Shown: positions 39,079 through 64,000 of the stretch, piece by piece
How the letters are laid out: each line of letters starts with the position of its first letter
How positions within the stretch are numbered: position 1 is the first letter of the stretch
NCBI RefSeq assembly: GCF_030144855.1
Contig: NC_082712.1
Span: 136,834,001-136,898,000 of the forward strand
Reading direction: 5' to 3'
Source of the DNA: Hypanus sabinus
Taxonomy: Eukaryota
Length of the DNA stretch: 64,000 bases
Notes under the pieces: model-generated
The model's database searches: none
The model's input: only the letters and a program-made list of their open reading frames with translations
What the model was told of the DNA's origin: nothing
Translations under genes and position numbers: made by a program

Positions 39079-39729
39079 CTAGAGAAGAGACATACAGCAA
39101 TAAAGGAGTTTATTTGTTAACACAGATGTCACAAATACGTATCAGGTGAAAGTGTGGGATGCATGCTCAGCAAGATTCTTTAAAACAGAGTCAGTATTCA
39201 TTGCCTTGTGGAAGAGAAGGGAAGTGATCTTGTTTTAAAATGGAGGCCTAAAGTGATTACAAGCATGTTCAGGCATGGAAGTTAGCACCAGAGTCTACCA
39301 GAAAAATCCAGTCCACGTTAGAGTATTTGAAGAGTTGACGACATGATAGAGCCTGAAGGAAAAAGTAGTTCACCATAAGGTGCTCAAGTGTCTGTTTGGA
39401 GATGACTATTTGATTGATATTTACATATATAATCAGAAGAAACATTTGGTATACAAATGACGTGAGAAATTTAATTTTGTAAAGCTCAACCAGATCTGTG
39501 CTTGGCTGTTTCAGTGTATTCTTGTTATCATCTACAGAACAGTGGAAATTTATTGGATGTTGTCACCCAAGAAATGAAGGCAGCCATCAGACAGGGCACT
39601 GAAATGGTCTAGCAGCCTGTATAGAACGGCTCAAATTCACCATTCCAAATACTAATACTTGTCTCATGTGTAATAATCTAAAATTCTACTTTGCCCCAAT
39701 AATGGATCTCAAGTGAATGAACACTTTAC

Positions 39730-39774
39730 CTTTACATGTTGCTGTATTGTTGTCATCTTTCTTGACAGCATTGT
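39730..39774 (-). CDS. Candidate 45-bp micro-exon (DNAVKKDDNNTATCK in phase 1)
   Basis: Acceptor ttcttccccctacag, donor G|gtaaag, length a multiple of 3, open in the phase left by exon B. Splice sites are conserved in the paralogous copy at 35.4 kb. Confidence 0.5.
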
Positions 39775-41396: not shown

Positions 41397-42316
41397 CAGT
41401 GGTCCCCAACCACTGGGCCACGGATCGGCACCAGGCCGCAAAGCATGTGCTACTGGGCCGCAAGGAAATATGATTTGTTGATATGAAACAATACGAGTCT
41501 GCTGCACCATTCCTCACTCCCTGTCACACCCACTGTTGAACTTGAACGCACAAGATGTCATCAGTCACCCAAATGCAGTGATACCCTCGCGCCAGGGATC
41601 ACTGGTTGGACTCGCGCGGCCGGCAGGAAGTACCGTTGCTACCGGCCTGGAGCGCGGACAGATGGGCACTGCCTCTAAACCTGTTTACCACTCTGAACGT
41701 TCATGGGGAACCCAGTGCTAAAATATTCGCGGACGACCTAATTCGGGCTCAGGGTTTTGTAAGTAACAGAGCAGCTACTTCGCTGCGATCAACTGAAAGT
41801 CATCCCTCGAGACAAACTTCTGTCGGTTGATAGATCCTAAAGATCTACAAGAAGGGGTGGGCAGGTGTCCATTTGCATTCCTCGCTCGGTCGGTCGCTCT
41901 CTCCAGACTGCGACCGCCGCGGCCTTGGTACGGGGATCTCCGGCCCTTACCTTGTCCTCCCACTGGTGTGTTGCAATGATTTTATATGTTCATACGAGGA
42001 AAATATGCACTGTTTAATATCCAAACGTTACTAAAAATGTTATGATGCTACTGACAGAGAGTTATAATTGACACCACTATATTCATCCGAGGAAAATATG
42101 CGCTGTGTTTAATATTAAATTCGTTAGATAAACCCTTTTAGAAACAAAATTGAGTGTATTAGCCACTTATAAGTGACTTATAGTTGACTTATCACCTATA
42201 TTTCAGTTGTGATTAACACACCCATCCACTCCCCCCCCCCCACACCTGTCGGCCAGTCCGCAAGAATATTGTCAATATTAAGCTAGTCCGTGGTGCAAAA
42301 TGGTTGGTGAACCCTG
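41397..42316. mobile_element. hAT MITE
   Basis: TIRs cagtggtccccaacc / ggttggtgaaccctg; 8-bp TSD atctaact / atctaacc. Confidence 0.8.
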
Positions 42317-43625
42317 ATCTAACCAGATGTTAGACTGTAACCTCCTAGAATTATCCATCCACAGTATTAGGAACACTGTTTCAGTCAATGTGAGGTTTGA
42401 TATGAAGTAAATGGTTAAATTAATATATTGTTAAGTTTAAAATGATCGATCATTGCATCTATAACAACTTCACTGAAATGTGTCACGTGAGCAAATGAGT
42501 ACTCTGCACTACAATTGCTGGTGAGGACGTGGCTGTGCTGAGGACCTACAGGTACCTGGGAATGCACCCGGATGACAGAATTGAGTGGAGCAACAACACA
42601 GAGGCTGCGTCCAAGAAGGGCCAGAGTTTCCTCTACGTCTTGAGAAGACTAAACTCCTTTGGAGTATGCAGTACTCCTTTGCACCTGTTCTATCAGTCTG
42701 TTGTCGCCAGTACAATCTTCTACACGGTGGTGTGCTGGGGCAATGGCAACAACATGGGTATTGCCTGCAGGCTCTATTAACTTCGTACAAATGCTGCCTC
42801 TGTTATAGGAGTCTAACTGGATGCTGTGGTAGATCAAAGGACCTTGCAGAAAATCCTGGCAATTCTGGACAATGATCTCACCCTCTGTATGCCATCTTGG
42901 CTGAACGGAAGAGAACTTTGAGTAATAGATTAAGGCAGCTGTGCTGCTTCAATGAGTGCTATATCAGGTCATTCTTAACCTCCACCACTAGGTTCTATAA
43001 TGGCTGACTCATTATAGGGTAGGGATGATCCCCTCTGTTGCACTGCTTGAGTTAACTTATTTTTTTATTCTTTTGACTCCTGTTCTAATATTTATATCTG
43101 TGCACTTGTAATGCTAAGGTGACACTGTAAATTCCTTTGGAATAAATAAAGTATCTCTATCTAACTACTACAACAGACTCTCCCGCGAAGGTGTAATTAG
43201 AATTCTTTCTTTTGAACTTTCTTTGTCTTTTCTTGAACCACCTCACATTTGATACAACTTACAACATCTGTTTTTGCTAGTGTATCATTGAAATTAGAAT
43301 AAAACTTAATCGATCTGCACCCTGAACAATTAAGAACCAAGAAACGCAAATAATAACTGAGGACATCATAGTGTATTCTCATTGATATGCCAGTTCTAGG
43401 CACTCAGTATATGTAACTGTGGCCAAGATGCTACGCTCTGTTGGATAGCAGCAAATGATGTACTGGCGGTCTTATCAGAATAAGGAGAGTCAATCTCATT
43501 GAAATGTACAAAACTCTTATCTGTCTGGACAGGAATTAATGTGCAGTTGATGTTTCAGCTGGCTGATATAGCGAGAACAAGGTATCTGAGTCTTACAGTT
43601 AGGATTTGAGAAAAAGATTTTGTCA

Positions 43626-45004
43626 AAAAAGGTAGTAGGGATAGTCCAGGTAATTATAGATCAGTGAGCCTCACGTCTGCGATGGGAAACCTGTTGGAAA
43701 AGATTCTTAGAGATAGGATCTATGGGCATTTAGAGAATCATGGTCTGATCAGACAGTCAGCATGGCTTTGTGAAGGGCAGATCGTGCCTAACAAGCCTGA
43801 TAGAGTTCTATGAGGAGGTGACCAGGCTGAGGGTAGTGCAGTGGATATGATCTACATGGATTTGACAAGGCATTTGACAAGGTTCCACACGGTAGGCTTA
43901 TTCAGAATGTCAGAAGGCATGGGATGCAGGGAAGTTTGGCCAGGTGGATTCAGAATTGGCTTGCCTGCAGAAGGCAGAGGGTTGTGTTGGAGAGAGTACA
44001 TTCAGATTGGAGGGATGTGACTAGTGGTGTCCCACAAGGATTTGTTCTGGGACCTCTACTTTTTGTGATTTTTATTAACGACCTGGATGAGGGGGTAGAA
44101 GGGTAGGTTGACAAGTTTGCAGATGACACAAAGGTTGGTGGTGTTGTAGATGGTGCAGAGAATTGTCGAAGATTACAGAGGGACATTGGTAGGATACAGA
44201 AGTGGGCTGAGAAGTGGCAGATGGAGTTCAACCCGGAGAAGTGTGAGGTGGTACACTTTGGAAGTACAAACTCCAAGGCAGAGTACAAAGTAAATGGCAG
44301 GACACTTGGTAGTGTGGAGGAGCAGAGAGATCTGGGGCTACATGTCCACAGATCCCTGAAAGTTGCCTCACAGGTAGATGGGGTAATTAAGAAAGCTTAT
44401 GGGGTGTTAGCTTTCATAAGTCAAAGGATAGAGTTTAAGAGACGCAATGTAATGATGCAGCTCTAAAAATCTCTAGTTAGGTCACACTTGGAGTACTGTG
44501 CCCAGTTCTGGTCACCTCACTATAGGAAGGATGTGGAAGCATTGGAAAGGGTACAGAGGAGATTTACCAGGATGCTGCCTGGTTTAGAGAGGATGGATTA
44601 TGATCAGAGATTAAGGGAGCTAGGGCTTTGCTCTCTGGAAAGAAGGAGGATGAGAGGAGACATGATAGGGGTAAACAAGATATTAAGAATAGACAGAGTG
44701 GACAGCCAGCACCTCTTCCCCAGGGCACCACTGCTCAGCACAAGAGGACATGGCTTTAAGGTAAGGGGAGGGAAGTTCAAGGGGGATATTAGAGGAAGGT
44801 TTTTCACTCAGACAGTGGTTGGTGCGTGGAATGCACTGCCTGAGTCAGTGGTGGAGTCAGATACACGAGTGACATTTAAGAGACTACTAGACAGTTTATA
44901 TGGAAGAATTTAAGATGGGTGGTTATATGGGAGGTGGGGTTTGAGGGTCGGCACAACATTGTGGGCTGAAGGGGCTATAATGTGCTGTACTATTCTATGT
45001 TCTA
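43626..45004 (+). mobile_element. 5'-truncated CR1 LINE (degenerate RT)
   Basis: RT motifs (SGVPQG..LGPLLF, FADDTK, LEYCAQFWSPHY) and a ttctatg tail. 5-bp tgtca direct repeat on both sides. Empty site tgtcagtcagagc in the downstream units. Confidence 0.9.
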
Positions 45005-45231
45005 TGTCATTCAGAGCTGAGGAAGCTATAAACCCACAATCTTCAAGGCAGAAATTGAAAGATATTGGAAAATAAAGTCTGTGGGGCCAAAACAGGGATA
45101 TGACACTGCAATAAATAAAACAAAGCCTGGCATGATCTCACTGAATAGAAAAGCAGCCATGAGAGGACAAATGGCTTAGACTGCTTCTCAGGGTACAATG
45201 TGATCACAGACTTGGTTAGAATGGTATTCAC

Positions 45232-45561
45232 CTCTTAACTGCAGACGGTAACTCGATGTCACAGGCTTGCTTGAAGTTTCAGAGTGAAGGAATTGCATTT
45301 TGAACTCTTTCCCATGATCTGCAGTCGTTGGTGTAAATGTCCACTGGGATGATCGTGAGTACAAACCACTGGAATCCTCTTTACTTGCTTCGGTGACTAT
45401 TCCTACTTTTGATGGATTTTGAACTTTACTGAAATCTTTGAACCAGAATATCTGATTTCCTTCTGGATAAAATTCATAAGCCGTGCAGGAAAGTGTTAAA
45501 GACTTTCCTATTTCAGGGGAAGGTGGATCTGCCTTAATTTCCAAGATCTTTGGCAATGAAA
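45232..45561 (-). CDS. Multi-Ig gene, C1-set exon B (3'-most copy)
   Basis: tctag acceptor, gtgaat donor, 330 bp, open frame. Confidence 0.85.
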
Positions 45562-46456
45562 CTAGACATAAAAAAGGAAGAAAAATAAGTTAAACTAAAT
45601 ATGCAATTTAGAGAAGATTACAATTTAAACCAAAACTGACAGGCATTTCTTAGTAAGTACTTCAAGACTGAAAACTATTAAAAGCAATGTAAAAAAAAAA
45701 CAATTGCCATGTCTTTCCTGATTTGGATTATTATTTTATTTCTAATGATTGGATCTCACTGCTTTCTTGTGGGTTCTCAGCTGTTGGTGATTGCTCATTA
45801 TCCTGTTGTTAAGCAATTAGCTTTCATCATCACGGCAGCCATCTTACATTGTTTTTATTTCACTTAGTAGTTAGAAGCACTGGTTATTTGAATCTGCCTT
45901 TTATTAGAATACTAATATTTTAATTAAAAATAGATTCATTCAGGAGAGTTCTTTAAACTATCCTATATCCTTTTAATAGTGTGAAACCTGTCAAACACCC
46001 TTGATAAGTATAGTCATATGGCGGCTAGTTTTGATCAAATAGTTTATAATTTTTACAATCAATAACAATTTAAAGTTTTATACTTTTCCCTCTTAACTAT
46101 ATCTATGCATTAACTTTTACTTCTTTGCCTACTAATCAATGAATTCACCCTTTTTATAGAACATAGAATAGTACAACAATTTAATTTCATTTAATTTCTT
46201 TCATTTTCTAAGGAAATCTCTGTTCAATCAAATCAACCATGTTCACTTTCCTTTGCAATAATACAATTAGCCTGTAGGCTTTGCAACAGTTGGCTTTCTG
46301 TCTTAGTAAACGGATGCCAAAGTATTACAAGGGTATGTCCCAGTACCAACAGTTATCATTAGACGGCCATCTTTTATGAATTTCAAATTGATTGTAGAAA
46401 AAAACAATTTCAGAAGCAAAAAGTGATCATGCTTTAGTTAAAAACCTGTTACTTAC

Positions 46457-46768
46457 TCACTTCACCAGCTACCCAATGAGTCTCTTTTGGCTTTGATAAG
46501 CTCTCATGTGTGACTTGGCATGTGTATTTTGTCCTAGCGTCAGCAATGGTGAGAACAATCTTCACATTAGCTGTCAGCTGATAGAGTTCATCCTGTCCAG
46601 TTTCTGCTTTATTAACTACAGAATTTTGTTGAATTTCTGAGCCATCTTTGAGCCATTTAACAGTGATATCTCTGGGGAAAAATGAACTTATTTGACAGCT
46701 TAAGTTCACGGGCTCTTTTGCAATTGGTTTTGCTGTGTTACACTTTATAGTGCCCAGTTTTGGAGGAG
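46457..46768 (-). CDS. Multi-Ig gene, C1-set exon A (copy at 46.5 kb)
   Basis: ttccag acceptor, gtaagt donor, 312 bp, open frame. Confidence 0.88.
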
Positions 46769-46849
46769 CTGGAAGAGAAAAAAAAGGTTTTAAACATTAG
46801 CAGATTTTTAAAAGTGGGGAATTAGATAGTGCGCTTTCCATATGTAATT

Positions 46850-49800
46850 CTTTCTTTCTTTTTCAATCTTTTTATTAAATTTCATATATAAAAAAAAACA
46901 ACACAAAATAATGAATAGATTACAGATTCAATAAACTTGAGATTACATTAGTAATAGGATAATAATATCCTATTAAAACATCCATCAACAAAAGGTGCAT
47001 AAATCAATCAAGTCTATGTAAATATATATGAAAAACAAAAATAATCGTCGAAAAAAGAGAAAAAAAAAAAAATTGAAATTATATATGAGAAAAAATATAT
47101 AATGAAAAAAAATACTAAACTAACACTAACATGGGCAATAATAACACTTTATAAATATATAAAGGTGTCAAGAAAAGAACTCCAGAACTCCATACCTGAA
47201 CAAGTATAAGTAGAGAAAAGGATCTGAAATAAGCCAAATTAATTCATATGAAAGTGTCGAATAAATGGTCCCCAGGTTTCTTCAAATTTAATTGAAGAAT
47301 CAAAGATAGTGCTTCTGATTTTTTCCAAACTCAAATAAGAAATAGTTTGGGAGAACCACTGAAATGTAGTAGGAGGATTTACTTCTTTCCAGTTTTGTAA
47401 TATAGACCTTCTGGCAATTAATGTTACAAAGGCAATCATTCGTCTGATTGAAGGGGAAAGTTGATTGCCATCTTCATTTGGTATACCGAAAATTGCAGTA
47501 ATAAAATGGGGTTGTAAATCGATATTCCATACTGAGGAAATGACATCAAAAATGTCCTTCCAATAGTTATGTAAAGTGGGACATGTCCAAAACATGTGAG
47601 TCAATGAAGCCACTTCTAAGTGACATCTGTCACATTGAGGATTGATATGCGAATAAAATCGGGCAAGTTTATCTTTAGACATATAAGCTCTATGTACAAT
47701 TTTAAATTGTATTAAAGCATGTTTAGCACAAATAGAGGGGGAATTAACCATTTGTAAAATTTTTTCCCATTTATCTGTTGATATATTACATCGAAGTTCT
47801 TTTTCCCATTCTTGTCTAATTCTATCCGATATTTCTGGCTGTATCTTCATAATCATGTTATAAATAAAAGCTACTAATCCCTTCTGACAAGGATTAAAAG
47901 TAAAAATCAAATCTGAAAAATCCGATGGAGTTGAATTAGGAAAAGATGAAAGAATTTTATGTAAGAAATTTCTAATTTGTAAGTATCTAAAAAAATTAGA
48001 TTTAGGTAATTCAAATTTGTTGGATAGTTGATCAAAGGACATCAAAGTACCTTCAAAAAAAAGATCACGAAAACATTTTATACCTTTCCTTTTCCATATA
48101 CTAAAAGCTTGATCTGTCAATGAAGGTTTAAAAAAAAAATTACATAAAATAGGGCTGTCCAAAGCAAAGTTTTTCAGATTAAAGAATTTGCGAAATTGAA
48201 ACCAAATTCGTAGTGTATGTTTAACAACAGGGTTAGATATCTGTTTATTGAATTTGGCTAAATCAATAGGAAGAAAAGAACCAAGAACGGAAAATATAGA
48301 ATATCCCTTAACCTCACTACATTCCAAATTTACCCACTGTGGGCACACAGGTGAATCCAAATCTAGTTTCCAGTACATTAGGTTACGAATATTATTCGCC
48401 CAATAATAAAATCTAAAGTTAGGTAAAGCTAGACCACCATCTTTTTTAGACTTTTGTAATTGCCTTTTGCTTAACCTAGGATTTTTATTTTGCCAAACAA
48501 ATGAGGAAATCTTTGAATCAATATTATCAAAAAAAGATTTAGGAATAAAAATTGGTAAAGCTTGGAATAAATATAAAAATTTCGGTAAAATCATCATTTT
48601 AATAGCATTAATCCGACCAACTAATGATAAAAATAAGGGAGACCATCTAGTAGTAAGTTGCTGAATTTGATGAAGCATAGGTAAAAAATTCAGTCCAAAT
48701 AAATCTTTATATTTCTTGGTGATTTTTATACCTAAATAGATAAAGTTATCAGTAACAACTTTAAATGGCATCCTATCACTCAATAAAGTTTGCGGGTTTA
48801 AAGGGAATAACTCACTCTTATCTAAGTTTAACTTATAACCAGAAAAACTACCAAATTGAGCCAACAAGGATAAAATAGCAGGAATAGACCTACTAGGATT
48901 AGAAATATATAACAACAAATCATCAGCATAAAGCGATAATTTGTATAACTTCTCATTACGGGTAATACCAAAAATATTAGGAGACTCACGAATAGCAATA
49001 GCTAAAGGTTCTAATGCAATATTAAATAATAAAGGACTTAAAGGACAACCTTGTCTCGTACCACGAGATAATTGAAAAAAAGAGGATCTATAATTATTTG
49101 TAAGAACAGAAGCAACAGGTTTATAATATATTAATTTAATCCATGATATAAAATTAGGACTAAAATTAAAGTTTCTCAATGCATTAAATAAATATGTCCA
49201 TTCAACTCTATCAAAGGCTTTTTCAGCATCTAATGAGATAACACATTCTGGGGTTGTAGGTGATGAAGTATAAATTATGTTAATCAATTTTCTAATATTA
49301 AAAAAGGAATATCGATTCCTAATAAAACCAGTTTGATCTTCTGAAATAATCTGTGGTAATACCTTTTCTAATCTAATGGCTAAAATTTTTGTAAGAATCT
49401 TAGAGTCTACATTTAATAATGATATAGGGCGATAAGATGCACATAAGGTAGGATCTTTATCTTTTTTAAGAATTAGAGAGATAGTAGCTTCATAAAACGA
49501 TTGAGGTAATCTCTTCTTAACAAACGCATCATTAAAGATTTCACATAGCCAAGGAGAAAGCAATAAAGAAAAAGTTTTAAAAAATTCTACAATAAAACCA
49601 TCAGGACCAGGAGCTTTCCCTGAATTCATTGATGAGATAGCCTCTCTTATTTCATCCATAGAAATAGGAGCATCAAGCAAGCTACAATCTTCATCTATCA
49701 GTTTAGGAATATTCAAATTATTAAAAAAATTATCCATCGTAAACCGGTCACCGTCAAATTCTGATTGATATAAAGATTTATAAAAATCTTGAAAAGTGTT

Positions 49801-52144
49801 ATTGATTTCTTTATAATCAGTAGTTAAATTACCGTCTTGTTTACGAATTTTAATAATTTGTCGCTTAGTCGAAATAGCTTTTAATTGATTAGCTAACAAT
49901 TTACCAGTTCGATCACTATGAATATAAAATTGAGCCCTAGTCTTAATTAATTGATTCTCAATTGAAGAAGATAATAATAAACTATGTTCCATTTGAAGCT
50001 CAACTCTCTTCTTATAAAGTTCTTTGGTAGGAGTAACGGAATAAATCTTATCAATTTCTTTAATTTTATCCACCAATAAAGCTATATCTGAATATCTTTG
50101 TTTTCTTTTACCAGCGGAATATGAAATAATTTGTCCACGAATAAAAGCCTTGAAAGAGTCCCAAAGTATTCCTTTATCAATCTCTTCATTATAGTTTGTT
50201 GAAAAAAATAAGTCAATTTGTTGTTTTATGAAGGTAATAAATTCTGGATCTTGAAGTAAAGTAGCATTAAGTCTCCAAGATCTAGTATTGATAGAAGAAT
50301 CCGAAATCTTGATAGATAACTTCAGAGGCGCATGATCCGAAATAGCAATAGAATCGTATTTACAATCAATAACATCTGTTAATAAACGATGATCAATAAG
50401 AAAGTAATCAATTCTAGAATAACTATGATATACATGTGAAAAGAATGAAAATTCTTTACCTTTAGGGTTCAAAAACCGCCATATTTCAGTAATTCCAGAA
50501 TCAACCATAAAAGAATTAATAAGTAAAGCTGATCTATTCGGAAGAGTTCGAATAGGTTTAGATCTATCCATCGAAGGATTCAAACAACAATTAAAGTCTC
50601 CACCCATAATCAACATATATTCATTCAAATTAGGAAGAGAAGTAAATAACCGTTTAAAAAATTCAGGACAATCAAAGTTTGGAGCATAAATATTAACTAA
50701 AACAACTTTCCGATTAAAAAGTGAACCAGTTATCAACAAAAATCTACCCTGTGGATCAGAAATAATTTCATAATGTGTAAACGAAATTGAGGCGTCTATA
50801 AAAATAGACACACCCCTAATTTTAGCGGTACAATTTGAGTGAAATTGTTGACCTTTCCAGAACCTAAAAAAACGTTGATTATCCTCCCTCCTAATGTGGG
50901 TCTCCTGTGCAAAAATAATATTAGCGTTCAATCTATGGAATACTTTAAATATTTTTTTACGTTTAATCGGATGATTTAAACCATTAGTATTCCACGAGAT
51001 AAAGTTAATAGATTTATCCATCATACCAATATTAATTGTGTGTATCATAAAAGGTTAAAAAAACACATAACCCACAATTTAGGAAGAAGGAAAATTGATT
51101 CAGGAGCAACCGGAGATCCTGACACCTCAACAATATTAACAATTTAAAGTCAGCCCATAAACTAAAAGCAAAAAAATAAAAAGCAAAAGCATGAAAAAAG
51201 ATCCCTCCCCCCTCCCCCCACCCTTTGAAAGAAAGCCAAGCGGCAGGCGCATAAACTAATACTAATATTACCCCCATTTCAAGATGGCAGCTCCATAAGA
51301 AAATTTTTTAAGAAAAAACTATATAACACCCCAATTAAAATATAGAGTTGCAAAAAAAAAAAATATATATATATATATATACCTACATATATATATATAT
51401 ATATATACATACACATACACATACACACCCATATCAGACAAATCAAAAAAAAACTAAAATAGTAAAACCAGAAAGATCATTAATAAAAAAAAAAATGCAC
51501 ATTAAAGTTTAAAAATGTGATACACCTTTAAAAAAGAATTTCCATATTCAGATACAAAGATGACGTTTCACAAGCCAAGACTTATGGGAAGAAGAAACGA
51601 CATTTTGAGAAAGCCATATTACAAAATATGAATATAAATTCAGCAATCTAATGAGAAAATATAGTAAAAAAAAAGTTATCAAAATAGAATATTTTTATAT
51701 AAAAAAAAAGATTTAATAGACACTACAACATATTTAAAAAAAAACTAAAGAAAAAGAATTCAAAACCTTTGTTCCATTTCTAAATACAGGCAAACAAATA
51801 AACGCTTATAAAAAGTAAAGACTTATGGGAAGAAGAAACGACATTTTGAAAAAAATAATTCATTATTACAAAATACAAACGTATATAAAAAAAAGGATAT
51901 TATAAAGATTAAAACAGCATCTATAAGCAATAATAATAGTAAAAAAAAAGACCCAGACCCATAGTTCAAAATAAGAAGTTATAACCCAACTTCCAGGGTT
52001 AAAACTTAAAATGAAATAACATCCTCTCTCCAAAAAAAAATCTTCAATGTAACTCATAGTTCAAGTTGCACTAGAGGATCGATATTCTTCAACAAATTTC
52101 TTCGCTTCTTCAGGAGTGATAAAAAAGTGTAGACTGTTGTCGGG
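46850..52144 (-). mobile_element. L1-clade LINE, 5'-truncated within ORF1, with intact ORF2
   Basis: 12-bp TSD ccatatgtaatt (46838-46849 and 52145-52156). A-rich tail with AATAAA at 46871-46876. Empty sites at the equivalent positions near 56454 and 60760. ORF1 C-terminal remnant ...FFITPEEAKKFVEEY...* at about 52060-52144. Confidence 0.95.
47239..51048 (-). CDS. L1 ORF2p (APE endonuclease + reverse transcriptase + C-terminal CCHC), 1269 aa
   Basis: SWNTNGL, AQETH, GGDFN, SRIDY, SDH endonuclease motifs; QGCPLSP and LYADD RT motifs; CDRC...HMFWTC. Uninterrupted frame. Confidence 0.95.
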   Translation of the reverse strand: MIHTINIGMMDKSINFISWNTNGLNHPIKRKKIFKVFHRLNANIIFAQETHIRREDNQRFFRFWKGQQFHSNCTAKIRGVSIFIDASISFTHYEIISDPQGRFLLITGSLFNRKVVLVNIYAPNFDCPEFFKRLFTSLPNLNEYMLIMGGDFNCCLNPSMDRSKPIRTLPNRSALLINSFMVDSGITEIWRFLNPKGKEFSFFSHVYHSYSRIDYFLIDHRLLTDVIDCKYDSIAISDHAPLKLSIKISDSSINTRSWRLNATLLQDPEFITFIKQQIDLFFSTNYNEEIDKGILWDSFKAFIRGQIISYSAGKRKQRYSDIALLVDKIKEIDKIYSVTPTKELYKKRVELQMEHSLLLSSSIENQLIKTRAQFYIHSDRTGKLLANQLKAISTKRQIIKIRKQDGNLTTDYKEINNTFQDFYKSLYQSEFDGDRFTMDNFFNNLNIPKLIDEDCSLLDAPISMDEIREAISSMNSGKAPGPDGFIVEFFKTFSLLLSPWLCEIFNDAFVKKRLPQSFYEATISLILKKDKDPTLCASYRPISLLNVDSKILTKILAIRLEKVLPQIISEDQTGFIRNRYSFFNIRKLINIIYTSSPTTPECVISLDAEKAFDRVEWTYLFNALRNFNFSPNFISWIKLIYYKPVASVLTNNYRSSFFQLSRGTRQGCPLSPLLFNIALEPLAIAIRESPNIFGITRNEKLYKLSLYADDLLLYISNPSRSIPAILSLLAQFGSFSGYKLNLDKSELFPLNPQTLLSDRMPFKVVTDNFIYLGIKITKKYKDLFGLNFLPMLHQIQQLTTRWSPLFLSLVGRINAIKMMILPKFLYLFQALPIFIPKSFFDNIDSKISSFVWQNKNPRLSKRQLQKSKKDGGLALPNFRFYYWANNIRNLMYWKLDLDSPVCPQWVNLECSEVKGYSIFSVLGSFLPIDLAKFNKQISNPVVKHTLRIWFQFRKFFNLKNFALDSPILCNFFFKPSLTDQAFSIWKRKGIKCFRDLFFEGTLMSFDQLSNKFELPKSNFFRYLQIRNFLHKILSSFPNSTPSDFSDLIFTFNPCQKGLVAFIYNMIMKIQPEISDRIRQEWEKELRCNISTDKWEKILQMVNSPSICAKHALIQFKIVHRAYMSKDKLARFYSHINPQCDRCHLEVASLTHMFWTCPTLHNYWKDIFDVISSVWNIDLQPHFITAIFGIPNEDGNQLSPSIRRMIAFVTLIARRSILQNWKEVNPPTTFQWFSQTISYLSLEKIRSTIFDSSIKFEETWGPFIRHFHMN

Positions 52145-52502
52145 CCATATGTAATTATTTATAGCTTTGATAACTTTGGAAAAAGACATAAAAATAATTA
52201 TTAAATGTTTATTAAATTAAATCAGTGTAATCCTACCCTATTGATTTAGCTTGCTATATTCCTAAATTATCTCAAATCATTTCCCTTGTAACATTATTAC
52301 TACCTTGTAACAATAAGAGAAATATGGTATCAAGACAATGCATTCACCAGAGGAGCCTCCAAATCAAATAAGCAATCTGGATCCTTTTTCGGATCCAGGG
52401 TTACTGCTTTCTCTTGCTTGTCGTTAGTGGAGTGGTGCAGTATGCTACATAAGTACTACGAGTTCTGGTCTGTATTTTGCTCTGTGTGTGTATTTTATCA
52501 TG

Positions 52503-53214
52503 TGTTACGAATTCCCGTAACTGGATAACTTACCAGCAAAGATAGAGAGGTCTGTTGAAGTCTGATGTCACTATTTTCAAACGTTTTATTCGTAAACGGA
52601 CACAAAAGTAGGATTAATACATACATTCAGATAGGGCACATTGTCAACACTCAATCTAAAGCGCGGGTATATTAATAATCATCATTATTAAGTGAGCTCT
52701 ACGGTTGTCTAGGGGGTAATAGATTGTCCGTTGGAAATATAAAAGTCACTCAGAAGGCTGCAGGCCTCAGCCCTTTGAAAATCGCTGGGTTTCATGTGGG
52801 GCGACCGAGAGAGAGAGATTGAGGGGAGAAGAGAAAGAACTTGCCGAGTCTCGATGAATCTTCCGTGAATTCGGGGGAGCGTTGGTTTCCTCTCCCCGAT
52901 GTTAGTTAAAGCGGTTTTCTGTGATTCCAGCCACAGATTCCAATCCCGGAATCTAACGCACGTGGCTTCCTTCAGAATGGCTTCCCGCTGCTGCGGGAAC
53001 ACTCTCGTGTCTTCTTGATGCGTCTGAGGGGCTGTCCCCCTGAGACTCTCCTTTATACTTCCTCACGGGGTCGCAGGTGTCAATCAGGTTGTGATGATGC
53101 AATCTCTCTCTCAACCAGCCCACCTTGCCCAAGGGCTTTTCACGTGGTCTCCATGAGACAATAGTCGCTGTTGTCTTTATTCTGTATCGCTGGTGGTACC
53201 TGCAATTTGGCACG

Positions 53215-53250
<36 letters not shown>

Positions 53251-53332
53251 CAACAGGGTCTACTGACACCCCCCCCCCCCCCCAACGGGTGCTCTTGCGA
53301 TTCTCACAAAGGAGGGGGCTGGGATCATAACA
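52503..53332. mobile_element. Solo-LTR-like element in the repeat unit (copy 1)
   Basis: TGTTACGA...TCATAACA inverted termini; flanks catg/cgtg resemble a 4-bp TSD with one mismatch; internal TATAAAA. Confidence 0.55.
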
Positions 53333-54846
53333 CGTGTAAAGAACTGCGTTGAAATTTATTGGTTATGGGCACCCAAGAAATGAAGGCAACAGAATAACAG
53401 AGTGTTGAAATGGACTGGCAGCTTGTATACAACAGCTGAAATTCACTATTCCAAATACTAATACTTGTCTCGTATATAATAATATTCGACTTTGACCCAA
53501 TAATGGATTTCAAGTAAAACATGTCCAGTACCATAATTACTTATTTGCATGCTAACTGGCCCCAAGATTTTACACAATACTTTCAACTCTTTATGATATT
53601 GAAAACTCCTCCAGTAAAAGTATTGTTCTAATCATCTGACCAACTGTGCCAGTTAAAAATTACACATTTCCCACCTAGAATTTGTCATCCAATCTCATCA
53701 CCCCCCTCGTTTAACTGCTGTTCTGCAGCAGAAAGCACCAGCTAAGAGAAATCCATAGCACAATGATTGAGAGATTTCCTCAGTGACATCGGGCGTATTT
53801 GTGCCACACTGCTTTGTTATTAACCATATATTCCAGCAAAGAACCCTCCAAGGCAAGCATATGCTACTAGCGTACAAAGGAATTTTAACTGCACACAAAT
53901 TATTGTCACCCTCTACCTCGTTAAGTATATTTCTCCATCGTACATAATCACATTCCCTTTTCTCGTTTCTGACTCACTGATGTGAATTATGTTATTTGTT
54001 TTAAACAAGAAATAACAAACAAAACTTGGTAGTTTATTATCCTTAGAACAGCTTCAGGTTTACTTCCACTTAAAAATTCAGTACTGTTGTCCCAGTGCAA
54101 AAAGACAGCACAGCACAAGATTTCTGCGCACAATGGTTATTACAAATTAGAGGGAACATTGCGTCCTATTCCTTTTATTCCTGAAAATCTGTAACATTAC
54201 CAGCCTCTATTACTCCCCAGCAATGGGCTACACCCAAGCCCTGCACCATTGCACTGGTTAGTGACCTCACTTGATCCAGCACTTTTCAGTGCCGGACATC
54301 AGAGGCCGATTCTGCACACTGTCTCCGTGGCTTCCTCTGCACCCCATCTGTGCACTGAGGGCATCATAGTGTATTCTCATTGATATGCCCGTTCTAGGCA
54401 CTCAGTATATGTAACTGTGGCCAAGATGCTACGCTCTGTTGGATAGCAGCAAATGATGTACTGGGGTCTTATCAGAATAAGGAGAGTCGATCTCATTGAA
54501 ATGTACAAAACTCTTATCTGTCTGGACAGGGATTAATGTGCAATTGATGTTTCAACTGGTTGATATAGCGAGGACAAGATATCAGTGTCTTACAGTTTGG
54601 ATATGAGAAAAAGATATTGTCAGTCAGAGCGGTGAGGAAGCTATGAACCCACAACCTTCAAGGCAAAAATTGAAAGATATTGGAAAATAAAGTCTGTGGG
54701 GCCAAAACAGGGATATGACACTGCAATAAATAAAACAAAGCCTGGCATGATCTCACTGAATAGAAAAGTAGCCATGAGAGGACAAATGGCTTAGACTGCT
54801 TCTCAGGGTACAATGTGATCACAGACTTGGTTAGAATGGTATTCAC

Positions 54847-55176
54847 CTCTTAACTGCAGACGGTAACTCGATGTCACAGGCTTGCTTGAAGTTTCAGAGT
54901 GAAGGAATTGCATTTTGAACTCTTTCCCATGATCTGCAGTCGTTGGTGTAAATGTCCACTGGGATGATCGTGAGTACAAACCACTGGAATCCTCTTTACT
55001 TGCTTCGGTGACTATTCCTACTTTTGATGGATTTTGAACTTTACTGAAATCTTTGAACCAGAATATCTGATTTCCTTCTGGATAAAATTCATAAGCCGTG
55101 CAGGAAAGTGTTAAAGACTTTCCTATTTCAGGGGAAGGTGGATCTGCCTTAATTTCCAAGATCTTTGGCAATGAAA
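54847..55176 (-). CDS. Multi-Ig gene, C1-set exon B (copy at 54.8 kb)
   Basis: Same splice sites and protein as the other B copies. Confidence 0.85.
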
Positions 55177-56071
55177 CTAGACATAAAAAAGGAAGAAAAA
55201 TAAGTTAAACTAAATATGCAATTTAGAGAAGATTACAATTTAAACCAAAACTGACAGGCATTTCTTAGTAAGTACTTCAAGACTGAAAACTATTAAAAGC
55301 AATGTAAAAAAAAAACAATTGCCATGTCTTTCCTGATTTGGATTATTATTTTATTTCTAATGATTGGATCTCACTGCTTTCTTGTGGGTTCTCAGCTGTT
55401 GGTGATTGCTCATTATCCTGTTGTTAAGCAATTAGCTTTCATCATCACGGCAGCCATCTTACATTGTTTTTATTTCACTTAGTAGTTAGAAGCACTGGTT
55501 ATTTGAATCTGCCTTTTATTAGAATACTAATATTTTAATTAAAAATAGATTCATTCAGGAGAGTTCTTTAAACTATCCTATATCCTTTTAATAGTGTGAA
55601 ACCTGTCAAACACCCTTGATAAGTATAGTCATATGGCGGCTAGTTTTGATCAAATAGTTTATAATTTTTACAATCAATAACAATTTAAAGTTTTATACTT
55701 TTCCCTCTTAACTATATCTATGCATTAACTTTTACTTCTTTGCCTACTAATCAATGAATTCACCCATTTTATAGAACATAGAATAGTACAACAATTTAAT
55801 TTCATTTAATTTCTTTCATTTTCTAAGGAAATCTCTGTTCAATCAAATCAACCATGTTCACTTTCCTTTGCAATAATACAATTAGCCTGTAGGCTTTGCA
55901 ACAGTTGGCTTTCTGTCTTAGTAAACGGATGCCAAAGTATTACAAGGGTATGTCCCAGTACCAACAGTTATCATTAGACGGCCATCTTTTATGAATTTCA
56001 AATTGATTGTAGAAAAAAACAATTTCAGAAGCAAAAAGTGATCATGCTTTAGTTAAAAACCTGTTACTTAC

Positions 56072-56383
56072 TCACTTCACCAGCTACCCAATGAGTCTCT
56101 TTTGGCTTTGATAAGCTCTCATGTGTGACTTGGCATGTGTATTTTGTCCTAGCGTCAGCAATGGTGAGAACAATCTTCACATTAGCTGTCAGCTGATAGA
56201 GTTCATCCTGTCCAGTTTCTGCTTTATTAACTACAGAATTTTGTTGAATATCTGAGCCATCTTTGAGCCATTTAACAGTGATATCTCTGGGGAAAAATGA
56301 ACTTATTTGACAGCTTAAGTTCACGGGCTCTTTTGCAATTGGTTTTGCTGTGTTACACTTTATAGTGCCCAGTTTTGGAGGAG
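56072..56383 (-). CDS. Multi-Ig gene, C1-set exon A (copy at 56.1 kb; GSDIQQ variant)
   Basis: Same splice sites as the other A copies, with one E>D substitution. Confidence 0.88.
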
Positions 56384-56810
56384 CTGGAAGAGAAAAAAAA
56401 GGTTTCAAACATTAGCAGATTTTTAGAAGTGGGGAATTAGATAGTGCGCTTTCCATATGTAATTATTTATAGCTTTGATAACTTTGGAAAAAGACATAAA
56501 AATAATTATTAAATGTTTATTAAATTAAATCAGTGTAATCCTACCCTATTGATTTAGCTTGCTATATTCCTAAATTATCTCAAATCATTTCCCTTGTAAC
56601 ATTATTACTACCTTGTAACAATAAGAGAACTATGGTATCAAGACAATGCATTCACCAGAGGAGCCTCCAAATCAAATAAGCAATCTGGATCCTTTTTCGG
56701 ATCCAGGGTTACTGCTTTCTCTTGCTTGTCGTTAGTGGAGTGGTGCAGTATGCTACATAAGTACTACGAGTTCTGGTCTGTATTTTGCTCTGTGTGTGTA
56801 TTTTATCATG

Positions 56811-57521
56811 TGTTACGAATTCCCGTAACTGGATAACTTACCAGCAAAGATAGAGAGGTCTGTTGAAGTCTGATGTCACTATTTTCAAACGTTTTATTCG
56901 TAAACGGACACAAAAGTAGGATTAATACATACATTCAGATAGGGCACATTGTCAACACTCAATCTAAAGCGCGGGTATATTAATAATCATCATTATTAAG
57001 TGAGCTCTACGGTTGTCTAGGGGGTAATAGATTGTCCGTTGGAAATATAAAAGTCACTCAGAAGGCTGCAGGCCTCAGCCCTTTGAAAATCGCTGGGTTT
57101 CATGTGGGCGACCGAGAGAGAGAGATTGAGGGGAGAAGAGAAAGAACTTGCCGAGTCTCGATGAATCTTCCGTGAAATCGGGGGAGCGTTGGTTTCCTCT
57201 CCCCGATGTTAGTTAAAGCGGTTTTCTGTGATTCCAGCCACAAATTCCAATCCCGGAATCTAACGCACGTGGCTTCCTTCAGAATGGCTTCCCGCTGCTG
57301 CGGGAACACTCTCGTGTCTTCTTGATGCGTCTGAGGGGCTGTCCCCCTGAGACTCTCCTTTATACTTCCTCACGGGGTCGCAGGTGTCAATCAGGTTGTG
57401 ATGATGCAATCTCTCTCTCAACCAGCCCACCTTGCCCAAGGGCTTTTCACGTGGTCTCCATGAGACAATAGTCGCTGTTGTCTTTATTCTGTATCGCTGG
57501 TGGTACCTGCAATTTGGCACG

Positions 57522-57553
<32 letters not shown>

Positions 57554-57636
57554 CGACAGGGTCTACTGACACCCCCCCCCCCACTTCAACGGGTGCTCTT
57601 GCGATTCTCACAAAGGAGGGGGCTGGGATCATAACA
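56811..57636. mobile_element. Solo-LTR-like element in the repeat unit (copy 2)
   Basis: Same termini and flanks as copy 1. Confidence 0.55.
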
Positions 57637-59150
57637 CGTGTAAAGAACTGCGTTGAAATTTATTGGTTATGGGCACCCAAGAAATGAAGGCAACAGAATA
57701 ACAGAGTGTTGAAATGGACTGGCAGCTTGTATACAACAGCTGAAATTCACTATTCCAAATACTAATACTTGTCTCGTATATAATAATATTCGACTTTGAC
57801 CCAATAATGGATTTCAAGTAAAACATGTCCAGTACCATAATTACTTATTTGCATGCTAACTGGCCCCAAGATTTTACACAATACTTTCAACTCTTTATGA
57901 TATTGAAAACTCCTCCAGTAAAAGTATTGTTCTAATCATCTGACCAACTGTGCCAGTTAAAAATTACACATTTCCCACCTAGAATTTGTCATCCAATCTC
58001 ATCACCCCCCTCGTTTAACTGCTGTTCTGCAGCAGAAAGCACCAGCTAAGAGAAATCCATAGCACAATGATTGAGAGATTTCCTCAGTGACATCGGGCGT
58101 ATTTGTGCCACACTGCTTTGTTATTAACCATATATTCCAGCAAAGAACCCTCCAAGGCAAGCATATGCTACTAGCGTACAAAGGAATTTTAACTGCACAC
58201 AAATTATTGTCACCCTCTACCTCGTTAAGTATATTTCTCCATCGTACATAATCACATTCCCTTTTCTCGTTTCTGACTCACTGATGTGAATTATGTTATT
58301 TGTTTTAAACAAGAAATAACAAACAAAACTTGGTAGTTTATTATCCTTAGAACAGCTTCAGGTTTACTTCCACTTAAAAATTCAGTACTGTTGTCCCAGT
58401 GCAAAAAGACAGCACAGCACAAGATTTCTGCGCACAATGGTTATTACAAATTAGAGGGAACATTGCGTCCTATTCCTTTTATTCCTGAAAATCTGTAACA
58501 TTACCAGCCTCTATTACTCCCCAGCAATGGGCTACACCCAAGCCCTGCACCATTGCACTGGTTAGTGACCTCACTTGATCCAGCACTTTTCAGTGCCGGA
58601 CATCAGAGGCCGATTCTGCACACTGTCTCCGTGGCTTCCTCTGCACCCCATCTGTGCACTGAGGGCATCATAGTGTATTCTCATTGATATGCCCGTTCGA
58701 GGCACTCAGTATATGTAACTGTGGCCAAGATGCTACGCTCTGTTGGATAGCAGCAAATGATGTACTGGGGTCTTATCAGAATAAGGAGAGTCGATCTCAT
58801 TGAAATGTACAAAACTCTTATCTGTCTGGACAGGGATTAATGTGCAATTGATGTTTCAACTGGTTGATATAGCGAGGACAAGATATCAGTGTCTTACAGT
58901 TTGGATATGAGAAAAAGATATTGTCAGTCAGAGCTGTGAGGAAGCTATGAACCCACAACCTTCAAGGCAAAAATTGAAAGATATTGGAAAATAAAGTCTG
59001 TGGGGCCAAAACAGGGATATGACACTGCAATAAATAAAACAAAGCCTGGCATGATCTCACTGAATAGAAAAGCAGCCATGAGAGGACAAATGGCTTAGAC
59101 TGCTTCTCAGGGTACAATGTGATCACAGACTTGGTTAGAATGGTATTCAC

Positions 59151-59480
59151 CTCTTAACTGCAGACGGTAACTCGATGTCACAGGCTTGCTTGAAGTTTCA
59201 GAGTGAAGGAATTGCATTTTGAACTCTTTCCCATGATCTGCAGTCGTTGGTGTAAATGTCCACTGGGATGATCGTGAGTACAAACCACTGGAATCCTCTT
59301 TACTTGCTTCGGTGACTATTCCTACTTTTGATGGATTTTGAACTTTACTGAAATCTTTGAACCAGAATATCTGATTTCCTTCTGGATAAAATTCATAAGC
59401 CGTGCAGGAAAGTGTTAAAGACTTTCCTATTTCAGGGGAAGGTGGATCTGCCTTAATTTCCAAGATCTTTGGCAATGAAA
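59151..59480 (-). CDS. Multi-Ig gene, C1-set exon B (copy at 59.2 kb)
   Basis: Same splice sites and protein as the other B copies. Confidence 0.85.
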
Positions 59481-60376
59481 CTAGACATAAAAAAGGAAGA
59501 AAAATAAGTTAAACTAAATATGCAATTTAGAGAAGATTACAATTTAAACCAAAACTGACAGGCATTTCTTAGTAAGTACTTCAAGACTGAAAACTATTAA
59601 AAGCAATGTAAAAAAAAAAACAATTGCCATGTCTTTCCTGATTTGGATTATTATTTTATTTCTAATGATTGGATCTCACTGCTTTCTTGTGGGTTCTCAG
59701 CTGTTGGTGATTGCTCATTATCCTGTTGTTAAGCAATTAGCTTTCATCATCACGGCAGCCATCTTACATTGTTTTTATTTCACTTAGTAGTTAGAAGCAC
59801 TGGTTATTTGAATCTGCCTTTTATTAGAATACTAATATTTTAATTAAAAATAGATTCATTCAGGAGAGTTCTTTAAACTATCCTATATCCTTTTAATAGT
59901 GTGAAACCTGTCAAACACCCTTGATAAGTATAGTCATATGGCGGCTAGTTTTGATCAAATAGTTTATAATTTTTACAATCAATAACAATTTAAAGTTTTA
60001 TACTTTTCCCTCTTAACTATATCTATGCATTAACTTTTACTTCTTTGCCTACTAATCAATGAATTCACCCATTTTATAGAACATAGAATAGTACAACAAT
60101 TTAATTTCATTTAATTTCTTTCATTTTCTAAGGAAATCTCTGTTCAATCAAATCAACCATGTTCACTTTCCTTTGCAATAATACAATTAGCCTGTAGGCT
60201 TTGCAACAGTTGGCTTTCTGTCTTAGTAAACGGATGCCAAAGTATTACAAGGGTATGTCCCAGTACCAACAGTTATCATTAGACGGCCATCTTTTATGAA
60301 TTTCAAATTGATTGTAGAAAAAAACAATTTCAGAAGCAAAAAGTGATCATGCTTTAGTTAAAAACCTGTTACTTAC

Positions 60377-60688
60377 TCACTTCACCAGCTACCCAATGAG
60401 TCTCTTTTGGCTTTGATAAGCTCTCATGTGTGACTTGGCATGTGTATTTTGTCCTAGCGTCAGCAATGGTGAGAACAATCTTCACATTAGCTGTCAGCTG
60501 ATAGAGTTCATCCTGTCCAGTTTCTGCTTTATTAACTACAGAATTTTGTTGAATTTCTGAGCCATCTTTGAGCCATTTAACAGTGATATCTCTGGGGAAA
60601 AATGAACTTATTTGACAGCTTAAGTTCACGGGCTCTTTTGCAATTGGTTTTGCTGTGTTACACTTTATAGTGCCCAGTTTTGGAGGAG
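60377..60688 (-). CDS. Multi-Ig gene, C1-set exon A (copy at 60.4 kb)
   Basis: Acceptor ttctcttccag, donor A|gtaagt, 312 bp, phase 1-1. Encodes APPKLGTIKC...VNLSCQISSFFPRDITVKWLKDG...YTCQVTHESL...WVAGEV, a canonical C1-set signature. Confidence 0.88.
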
Positions 60689-61115
60689 CTGGAAGAGAAA
60701 AAAAAGGTTTTAAACATTAGCAGATTTTTAAAAGTGGGGAATTAGATAGTGCGCTTTCCATATGTAATTATTTATAGCTTTGATAACTTTGGAAAAAGAC
60801 ATAAAAATAATTATTAAATGTTTATTAAATTAAATCAGTGTAATCCTACCCTATTGATTTAGCTTGCTATATTCCTAAATTATCTCAAATCATTTCCCTT
60901 GTAACATTATTACTACCTTGTAACAATAAGAGAAATATAGTATCAAGACAATGCATTCACCAGAGGAGCCTCCAAATCAAATAAGCAATCTGGATCCTTT
61001 TTCGGATCCAGGGTTACTGCTTTCTCTTGCTTGTCGTTAGTGGAGTGGTGCAGTATGCTACATAAGTACTACGAGTTCTGGTCTGTATTTTGCTCTGTGT
61101 GTGTATTTTATCATG

Positions 61116-61827
61116 TGTTACGAATTCCCGTAACTGGATAACTTACCAGCAAAGATAGAGAGGTCTGTTGAAGTCTGATGTCACTATTTTCAAACGTTTT
61201 ATTCGTAAACGGACACAAAAGTAGGATTAATACATACATTCAGATAGGGCACATTGTCAACACTCAATCTAAAGCGCGGGTATATTAATAATCATCATTA
61301 TTAAGTGAGCTCTACGGTTGTCTAGGGGGTAATAGATTGTCCGTTGGAAATATAAAAGTCACTCAGAAGGCTGCAGGCCTCAGCCCTTTGAAAATCGCTG
61401 GGTTTCATGTGGGGCGACCGAGAGAGAGAGATTGAGGGGAGAAGAGAAAGAACTTGCCGAGTCTCGATGAATCTTCCGTGAAATCGGGGGAGCGTTGGTT
61501 TCCTCTCCCCGATGTTAGTTAAAGCGGTTTTCTGTGATTCCAGCCACAGATTCCAATCCCGGAATCTAACGCACGTGGCTTCCTTCAGAATGGCTTCCCG
61601 CTGCTGCGGGAACACTCTCGTGTCTTCTTGATGCGTCTGAGGGGCTGTCCCCCTGAGACTCTCCTTTATACTTCCTCACGGGGTCGCAGGTGTCAATCAG
61701 GTTGTGATGATGCAATCTCTCTCTCAACCAGCCCACCTTGCCCAAGGGCTTTTCACGTGGTCTCCATGAGACAATAGTCGCTGTTGTCTTTATTCTGTAT
61801 CGCTGGTGGTACCTGCAATTTGGCACG

Positions 61828-61859
<32 letters not shown>

Positions 61860-61940
61860 CGACAGGGTCTACTGACACCCCCCCCCACTTCAACGGGTGC
61901 TCTTGCGATTCTCACAAAGGAGGGGGCTGGGATCATAACA
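61116..61940. mobile_element. Solo-LTR-like element in the repeat unit (copy 3)
   Basis: Same termini and flanks as copy 1. Confidence 0.55.
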
Positions 61941-63454
61941 CGTGTAAAGAACTGCGTTGAAATTTATTGGTTATGGGCACCCAAGAAATGAAGGCAACAG
62001 AATAACAGAGTGTTGAAATGGACTGGCAGCTTGTATACAACAGCTGAAATTCACTATTCCAAATACTAATACTTGTCTCGTATATAATAATATTCGACTT
62101 TGACCCAATAATGGATTTCAAGTAAAACATGTCCAGTACCATAATTACTTATTTGCATGCTAACTGGCCCCAAGATTTTACACAATACTTTCAACTCTTT
62201 ATGATATTGAAAACTCCTCCAGTAAAAGTATTGTTCTAATCATCTGACCAACTGTGCCAGTTAAAAATTACACATTTCCCACCTAGAATTTGTCATCCAA
62301 TCTCATCACCCCCCTCGTTTAACTGCTGTTCTGCAGCAGAAAGCACCAGCTAAGAGAAATCCATAGCACAATGATTGAGAGATTTCCTCAGTGACATCGG
62401 GCGTATTTGTGCCACACTGCTTTGTTATTAACCATATATTCCAGCAAAGAACCCTCCAAGGCAAGCATATGCTACTAGCGTACAAAGGAATTTTAACTGC
62501 ACACAAATTATTGTCACCCTCTACCTCGTTAAGTATATTTCTCCATCGTACATAATCACATTCCCTTTTCTCGTTTCTGACTCACTGATGTGAATTATGT
62601 TATTTGTTTTAAACAAGAAATAACAAACAAAACTTGGTAGTTTATTATCCTTAGAACAGCTTCAGGTTTACTTCCACTTAAAAATTCAGTACTGTTGTCC
62701 CAGTGCAAAAAGACAGCACAGCACAAGATTTCTGCGCACAATGGTTATTACAAATTAGAGGGAACATTGCGTCCTATTCCTTTTATTCCTGAAAATCTGT
62801 AACATTACCAGCCTCTATTACTCCCCAGCAATGGGCTACACCCAAGCCCTGCACCATTGCACTGGTTAGTGACCTCACTTGATCCAGCACTTTTCAGTGC
62901 CGGACATCAGAGGCCGATTCTGCACACTGTCTCCGTGGCTTCCTCTGCACCCCATCTGTGCACTGAGGGCATCATAGTGTATTCTCATTGATATGCCCGT
63001 TCGAGGCACTCAGTATATGTAACTGTGGCCAAGATGCTACGCTCTGTTGGATAGCAGCAAATGATGTACTGGGGTCTTATCAGAATAAGGAGAGTCGATC
63101 TCATTGAAATGTACAAAACTCTTATCTGTCTGGACAGGGATTAATGTGCAATTGATGTTTCAACTGGTTGATATAGCGAGGACAAGATATCAGTGTCTTA
63201 CAGTTTGGATATGAGAAAAAGATATTGTCAGTCAGAGCTGTGAGGAAGCTATGAACCCACAACCTTCAAGGCAAAAATTGAAAGATATTGGAAAATAAAG
63301 TCTGTGGGGCCAAAACAGGGATATGACACTGCAATAAATAAAACAAAGCCTGGCATGATCTCACTGAATAGAAAAGCAGCCATGAGAGGACAAATGGCTT
63401 AGACTGCTTCTCAGGGTACAATGTGATCACAGACTTGGTTAGAATGGTATTCAC

Positions 63455-63784
63455 CTCTTAACTGCAGACGGTAACTCGATGTCACAGGCTTGCTTGAAGT
63501 TTCAGAGTGAAGGAATTGCATTTTGAACTCTTTCCCATGATCTGCAGTCGTTGGTGTAAATGTCCACTGGGATGATCGTGAGTACAAACCACTGGAATCC
63601 TCTTTACTTGCTTCGGTGACTATTCCTACTTTTGATGGATTTTGAACTTTACTGAAATCTTTGAACCAGAATATCTGATTTCCTTCTGGATAAAATTCAT
63701 AAGCCGTGCAGGAAAGTGTTAAAGACTTTCCTATTTCAGGGGAAGGTGGATCTGCCTTAATTTCCAAGATCTTTGGCAATGAAA
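63455..63784 (-). CDS. Multi-Ig gene, C1-set exon B (copy at 63.5 kb)
   Basis: Acceptor tttatgtctag, donor G|gtgaat, 330 bp, phase 1-1. Encodes SLPKILEIK...LTLSCTAYEFYPEGNQIFWFK...GLYSRSSQW...YRLQLR. Confidence 0.85.
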
Positions 63785-64000
63785 CTAGACATAAAAAAGG
63801 AAGAAAAATAAGTTAAACTAAATATGCAATTTAGAGAAGATTACAATTTAAACCAAAATTGACAGGCATTTCTTAGTAAGTACTTCAAGACTGAAAACTA
63901 TTAAAAGCAATGTAAAAAAAAACAATTGCCATGTCTTTCCTGATTTGGATTATTATTTTATTTCTAATGATTGGATCTCACTGCTTTCTTGTGGGTTCTC

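Follow-up and report, generated by a model that had tools for sequence, protein, structure and literature searches.

An alternating pair of Ig C1-set exons amplified in the probable tail of a B7H6-family gene of Hypanus sabinus

RESULTS

Assignment of the array to LOC132397552

We analyzed a stretch of 64,000 nucleotides of Hypanus sabinus DNA (contig NC_082712.1, positions 136,834,001 to 136,898,000 of the forward strand; hereafter the window), in which two different immunoglobulin (Ig) C1-set exons, A and B, alternate on the minus strand in a tandem array at 45005-64000. The results indicate, with a probability of roughly 80%, that this region is the 3′ half of LOC132397552, a B7H6 (NCR3LG1)-family gene on the minus strand, whose tail has grown by duplication and homogenization of the (A-B) exon pair.

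Exon A was searched by HMMER against 1.8 billion representative proteins, and the best match was a 958-residue protein of Hemitrygon akajei. A family search from this protein led to XP_059832358.1 of H. sabinus (1408 residues), deposited as "uncharacterized protein LOC132397552". When spliced, the seven Ig exons and two mini-exons of the window were identical to residues 634-1408 of XP_059832358.1, with zero mismatches, showing that the array is part of the annotated gene. A Glu-to-Asp variant carried by one array copy also fell in the right place, the third A domain of the protein. The first-pass annotation, which was made from the letters alone, had described a separate multi-C1 protein adjoining a B7-H6-like gene; instead, the array is the post-transmembrane tail of the B7H6-family gene itself. 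It had also not recognized the protein as a described gene. The locus is in fact already annotated in RefSeq as LOC132397552; within the papers open to search, full-text searching returned no account of this array, of tail-domain amplification in B7H6-family genes, or of Ig domains behind a B7H6 transmembrane helix. NCBIfam held no model for the LOC132397552 protein.

By comparison with its relatives, XP_059832358.1 has the layout V-C1-TM-D1-D2-(A-B)x4 followed by 24 residues, where TM is a transmembrane helix, a hydrophobic 19-mer from residue 225 that lies between C1 and D1. The RefSeq model, which is consistent with the window DNA, includes all four A-B pairs, with Ile at each A-to-B join and Ala at each B-to-A join, just as had been predicted when the exon pair was first read as a symmetric in-frame module. 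Only one array exon lies past the right edge of the window, the first A exon (A1), which differs from the inner A copies at 4 residues (100 of 104 kept). The earlier count of at least seven C1 domains in the window with more off the right edge was correct for the seven, and the part beyond the edge came down to A1.

Placement in the B7H6 family

The V-C1 part of the protein lies outside the window and is tied to it by the exact match of residues 634-1408. When residues 1-217 (V-C1) were compared with PDB entries, human B7-H6 chains were the best matches, at 8e-32 to 1.5e-31 over both domains, followed by CD276 at 1.5e-21. The family search also returned the nurse shark "B7H6" QTT61906.1 (1092 residues) as a close full-length relative, and the same layout linked Bombina NCR3LG1; these names were given by depositors or automatically. 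The order V-C1-TM-D1-D2-A-B-...-T, where T is a terminal Ig-like exon, is common to rays, skates, sharks, chimaera, sturgeon, newt, frog, and lungfish, and the A-B module had a mean column identity of 68% in the alignment of relatives. Judged by these alignments, the B7H6 family has long conserved the A-B pair as a module.

In principle, the array might come from a different multi-C1 family (for example, UrIg2, IgW/IgNAR, or a SIRP gene). The best PDB sequence matches of exon A include SIRP-alpha and SIRP-gamma, with SIRP the best at 5.4e-20, as well as shark UrIg2, and UrIg2 has been reported with a varying number of C domains (PMC12227049). However, the exons lie within one annotated protein that has a B7-H6-like V-C1 part and a mid-protein transmembrane helix, and every closest full-length relative has the same layout, so that such an origin is hardly conceivable.

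As individual identities, UrIg2, a SIRP gene, and an Ig heavy chain were ruled out by the V-C1 match to B7-H6 and by the layout. UrIg2 members are recognized by a VJ-type V domain, only C domains after it, and 3′ transmembrane exons; in LOC132397552, the V-C1 part was B7-H6-like and the helix was mid-protein.

Splice anatomy and fold of exons A and B

The copies of the two exons in the window are as follows.

60377-60688, 56072-56383, and 46457-46768, minus strand: exon A, 312 bp, phase 1-1, encoding a C1-set Ig domain that has both canonical cysteines
63455-63784, 59151-59480, 54847-55176, and 45232-45561, minus strand: exon B, 330 bp, phase 1-1, C1-set Ig domain without the F-strand Cys

On the minus strand, the exons run in the order B-A-B-A-B-A-B, and all copies have a polypyrimidine tract with an AG acceptor and a GT donor (GTAAGT after A and GTGAAT after B). 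The mutual identity of A and B was only 30%, and they therefore form an alternating pair rather than a single repeated exon. Both scored above the cut-off of 21 bits for the Pfam C1-set model PF07654 (A, 61.1 bits; B, 32.0 bits). The repeat search, exon boundaries, and Pfam scores together bore out the initial description of two alternating C1-set exons with intact splice sites and symmetric phase. Because both exons are multiples of 3 bp, have phase 1-1, and retain their native splice sites, every unit lengthens the protein in frame by 214 residues, a C1-set pair resembling the d2-d3 domains of SIRP.

The AlphaFold2 model of A-B had a predicted local distance difference test (pLDDT) value of 94.6 and contained seven strands per domain. 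The top Foldseek matches of this model were the membrane-proximal C1 domains of SIRP-gamma and SIRP-alpha (template modeling score (TM-score) by query, 0.65-0.66), and IgG Fc was also found. In exon A, the Cys pair of the B-strand and F-strand and the Trp of the C-strand were invariant (19 of 19 relatives). In exon B, the B-strand Cys and the Trp were kept in 27 of 27 relatives, and the F-strand position was occupied in every relative by Met, or by Val in bony vertebrates.

Repeat units of the array

A direct-repeat search and self-BLAST showed that the array consists of a 4.3-kb unit arranged head to tail with a period of 4304-4308 bp. The units and the elements that interrupt or border them are listed below.

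60758-64000, minus strand: unit U1, cut by the window edge; contains exon B 63455-63784, with exon A 60377-60688 of the next register; 0.12% substitutions compared with U2
56453-60757, minus strand: unit U2, complete, 4305 bp (self-BLAST and pairwise alignment)
52145-56452, minus strand: unit U3, complete, 4308 bp; its exon A bears the sole exonic difference (Glu to Asp)
46854-52144, minus strand: long interspersed nuclear element (LINE) of 5.3 kb, within the intron that precedes the last A exon, where it separates U4 from U3 and the rest of the array
45005-46853, minus strand: unit U4, the last and partial unit, with exon A 46457-46768 and exon B 45232-45561; 0.32-0.54% substitutions
43626-45004, plus strand: CR1-like retroelement fragment of 1.4 kb, which terminates the homogenized part of the array
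43356-43625, minus strand: old flank, 94% identical to unit positions 54354-54622, that is, 6% diverged

The identity between copies was 99.5-99.9%, in agreement with the near-identity of whole units noted at first reading, and the near-identity of U4 to the other units ended at 45005. In the pairwise alignments, unit pairs differed by 4-12 substitutions (0.12-0.54%), and the units also varied in the length of a (TC)n tract and by small changes in homopolymer length. Among all of these differences, the Glu-to-Asp change in exon A of U3 was the only exonic substitution. The LINE had an intact ORF2 of 1269 aa, with endonuclease and reverse transcriptase, and was flanked by a target-site duplication of about 12 bp.

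Near-identical 4.3-kb units are difficult to assemble, and their count rests on the assembly rather than on reads; the repeat could have been over-expanded or collapsed, so that the true locus would have a different number of units. We regard such an artifact as quite improbable. Real substitutions, microsatellite length, and the LINE with its target-site duplication distinguish the units, which are therefore distinct copies in the assembly. The array is also free of gaps, the only run of N in the window being at 38113-38260, and orthologous and paralogous genes of three other assembled ray genomes have multi-copy tails too.

As a separate observation, the LINE at 46854-52144 is full length and appears young, possibly still active.

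Origin and history of the array

Each unit contains a remnant of the exon that precedes the array.

60991-61083, 56686-56778, and 52378-52470, minus strand: D2 stub (3′ end of the preceding Ig exon), one per unit, with an in-frame stop and no acceptor

The stub copies about 75-90 bp of the 3′ end of the D2 exon without the remainder of that exon and is located some 300 bp upstream of exon A. Since every unit bears this dead stub, the first duplication probably joined the interior of D2 to the intron after B. This illegitimate join would have created the first duplicate, and the later units would all have inherited the scar of the founding event.

In the tree built from V to D2, LOC132397552 was sister to Hemitrygon akajei XP_072905582.1 (support, 98/97), which has the tail (A-B)x2 without T, is open over 1007 residues, and has a leader. 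The first duplication is probably old, because this orthologue has more than one pair and because the outer flank is only 94% identical to the units. Later unequal crossing-over and/or gene conversion between units would then have altered the copy number and homogenized the inner copies to the identity now observed. Growth and shrinkage by unequal exchange, as the first-pass annotation had supposed, fits the four pairs in Hypanus compared with two in the Hemitrygon orthologue; we infer both this mechanism of recombination and tail length as the varying trait. In the comparison of relatives, the A and B copies grouped by species, and the inner copies were identical or nearly so. Together with the old flank and the layout shared with Hemitrygon, this grouping reads as the signature of an old array that has been kept uniform and changed in length.

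The grouping by species, and inner Hypanus units that differ by just 0.1-0.5%, would also suit a multi-pair state that arose independently in Hypanus and Hemitrygon by separate recent duplications. This is the weaker alternative to a single origin with concerted evolution, and we consider it doubtful: two derived states, multiple pairs and the loss of T, are common to the orthologues, and the 6% divergence of the 3′ flank from the units and the 4 residues separating A1 from the inner A copies both indicate an old first event. A single origin followed by concerted evolution is thus preferred.

Multi-copy tails were also present in other rays. In the Mobula hypostoma paralogue (LOC134353705), six B domains follow D2; in the M. 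birostris counterpart, six B domains follow A. In both tails, the four inner copies were identical within each species and slightly different between species, and the edge copies were distinct. The six-B Mobula gene was sister to the single-pair Mobula gene in the V-to-D2 tree, indicating that its expansion was separate from that of stingrays. In sawfish, an isoform with a second B was found. On the sequences compared, at least three ray lineages have each enlarged this part of the tail separately: whiptail stingrays by A-B pairs, devil rays by B only, and sawfish by an extra B. This suggests that tail length itself might be under some pressure.

3′ end of the gene and signs of decay

The 3′ end of LOC132397552 falls inside the window and comprises the following features.

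39730-39774, minus strand: tail mini-exon 1, 45 bp, phase 1-1
35411-35439, minus strand: coding part of tail mini-exon 2, with a 1-bp loss compared with paralogues that leads to the TGA ending the RefSeq protein
33206-33506, minus strand: relic of the terminal Ig-like exon T, frameshifted and past the stop

Single-pair paralogues retain exon T and run from the mini-exons into it.

Several points weigh against the proposed reading. The frameshift stop in mini-exon 2 and the frameshifted T exon make some decay of the gene possible. The RefSeq model lacks a signal peptide or leader, its first residue being a Met inside the V exon. Divergence of the exons within the array, a single substitution, is too small to reveal selection. 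Among the short proteins of the protein collection, no RNA-derived fragment with a B-to-A junction was found, the only hit being one unrelated Hemitrygon model of 168 aa. In addition, the joining of all four pairs in one mRNA is that predicted by the RefSeq (Gnomon) model, and the copy number is that of the assembly.

The first four of these points would equally suit a gene that is decaying or already dead, in which the A and B exons are perfect only since the copies are too young to have acquired lesions. We consider this unlikely. The non-repeated exons V, C1, TM, D1, and D2 are open in the model, and the branch of the gene was 0.048 compared with 0.056-0.058 in paralogues. A1 keeps 100 of its 104 residues, whereas the neutral flank is down to 94% at the DNA level. 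Furthermore, the Hemitrygon orthologue described above shares the T-less multi-pair layout and is open, with a leader, over its 1007 residues, so that this layout has lasted since the Hypanus/Hemitrygon split. A gene whose tail was lengthened by A-B duplication remains our preferred reading of LOC132397552.

The two mini-exons lie at equivalent positions of an older tandem duplication at 34118-43284, which has a period of about 4335 bp and an identity of 75-93%. The only N run of the window (38113-38260) sits inside this duplication.

Membrane side of the tail

To our knowledge, no C1-set domain has been found on the cytoplasmic side of a type I membrane protein. The layout of LOC132397552 raises the tentative possibility that true C1-set domains have been amplified on this side of such a protein, with tail length tuned fast by gain and loss of exon pairs in several ray lineages. 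In a variant of this proposal, the transmembrane exon is a cassette, and splicing would decide whether the ten-domain array forms a cytoplasmic tail or belongs to a long secreted protein. The evidence on the membrane side of the tail was mixed.

Three observations point toward the oxidizing side. Over a span exceeding 400 million years, the canonical Cys pair stayed invariant in D2 (16 of 16 relatives) and A (19 of 19). Conservation extended to unpaired cysteines, among them one in the B-strand of B (27 of 27) and one that is N-terminal in A (15 of 19). Predicted forms without the transmembrane segment were present in three species: the models Hemitrygon XP_072905590.1 and Bombina XP_053576614.1 skip exactly the transmembrane exon (38 and 34 residues, respectively), and Scyliorhinus (catshark) GCB65803.1 is also without it. 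Proteins made from such models would be secreted and carry every Ig domain on a single chain, and the transmembrane exon of non-mammalian B7H6 genes may thus be a cassette exon.

Other observations point toward the cytoplasm. A transmembrane helix after C1 was present in 56 of 59 relatives, including the elephant shark UniProt entry, which we take to be transcript-derived. D1 lacks both canonical cysteines, and B and T each lack one. Glycosylation sequons per 100 residues numbered 1.14 in V and 1.49 in C1 compared with 0.58 in A and 0.19 in B (0.2-0.6 across A, B, and T); these counts give a gradient rather than a decision on topology.

Neighboring features in the window

Downstream of LOC132397552, a V-set exon of another gene was present.

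361-795, minus strand: open reading frame with the V-set exon of the next B7H6-like gene, a more divergent family member distinct from the array gene

This neighbor is the B7-H6-like gene of the first-pass annotation, and the V exon belongs to it rather than to the array gene. Relatives of the array gene share 32% identity with this exon in their V-C1 part, and the other exons of the neighbor lie off the left edge of the window. Between the end of LOC132397552 and this exon, a stretch of 32 residues at 9143-9238 (minus strand) matched the leader of Hemitrygon XP_072905583.1 (its first 32 residues) at 91% identity and is likely a leader exon. Retroelement copies, CR1-like and others, make up most of the region 1-33000 and occur in both orientations (for example, 1636-4049 and 24315-26625, inverted and 78-81% identical), and tblastn revealed no further Ig exons in it.

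DISCUSSION

LOC132397552 offers a clear natural example of protein growth by whole-domain exon blocks in which the breakpoint scar, the D2 stub, is still visible. Growth by in-frame repetition of exon blocks is known from other genes, and the locus is a tidy example of it rather than a new principle. It belongs to an immune-ligand family in which no role is known for the long Ig tail, and the results mark domains A and B as a place to seek the function of this tail. They also flag the missing leader and the dead terminal exon in the RefSeq model. The interest of the array lies less in itself than in the attention it draws to the unexplained Ig tail of non-mammalian B7H6.

Among solved structures, human B7-H6 has the V-C1 ectodomain that best matches that of LOC132397552. 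We know of no Ig domains after the transmembrane helix of human B7-H6, whereas ten follow the helix here. Nurse shark B7H6 (QTT61906.1) and Bombina NCR3LG1 have the V-C1-TM-D1-D2-A-B...T layout in common with the LOC132397552 family; LOC132397552 itself no longer has the terminal T and carries four A-B pairs, compared with the single pair of its relatives. The d2-d3 domains of SIRP-alpha and SIRP-gamma provide both the best sequence match of exon A and the best two-domain fold match of A-B. However, their identity to A-B is only 22-23%, B has no F-strand cysteine, and the domains are placed differently in the protein.

Shark UrIg2, an Ig-like gene that does not rearrange, contains many C domains, and sharks and batoids differ in how many (PMC12227049). 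It differs from LOC132397552 in V type and gene family, its transmembrane exons are terminal, and its match to exon A is weaker than that of SIRP. Tandem duplication of C-domain exon blocks has been described for IgD of fish (delta2-delta3-delta4 in catfish, zebrafish, and salmon) and for coelacanth IgW (PMC5192425). As in LOC132397552, blocks of C1-set exons were tandem-duplicated within one gene, and their copy number varies by species; however, IgD and IgW are antigen-receptor heavy chains with all domains extracellular, whereas the block in LOC132397552 lies behind the transmembrane exon of a B7-family ligand.

In the kringle IV-2 repeat of LPA, the unit measures 5.5 kb and its two exons are 160 and 182 bp long (PMC4378929). 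In both genes, a multi-kb unit of two exons is repeated head to tail within the gene, and near-identical copies joined in frame set the length of the protein. The two exons of LPA together encode one kringle, whereas in LOC132397552 each exon encodes a whole Ig domain; copy-number variation of LPA is documented in populations, whereas that of LOC132397552 was seen between species.

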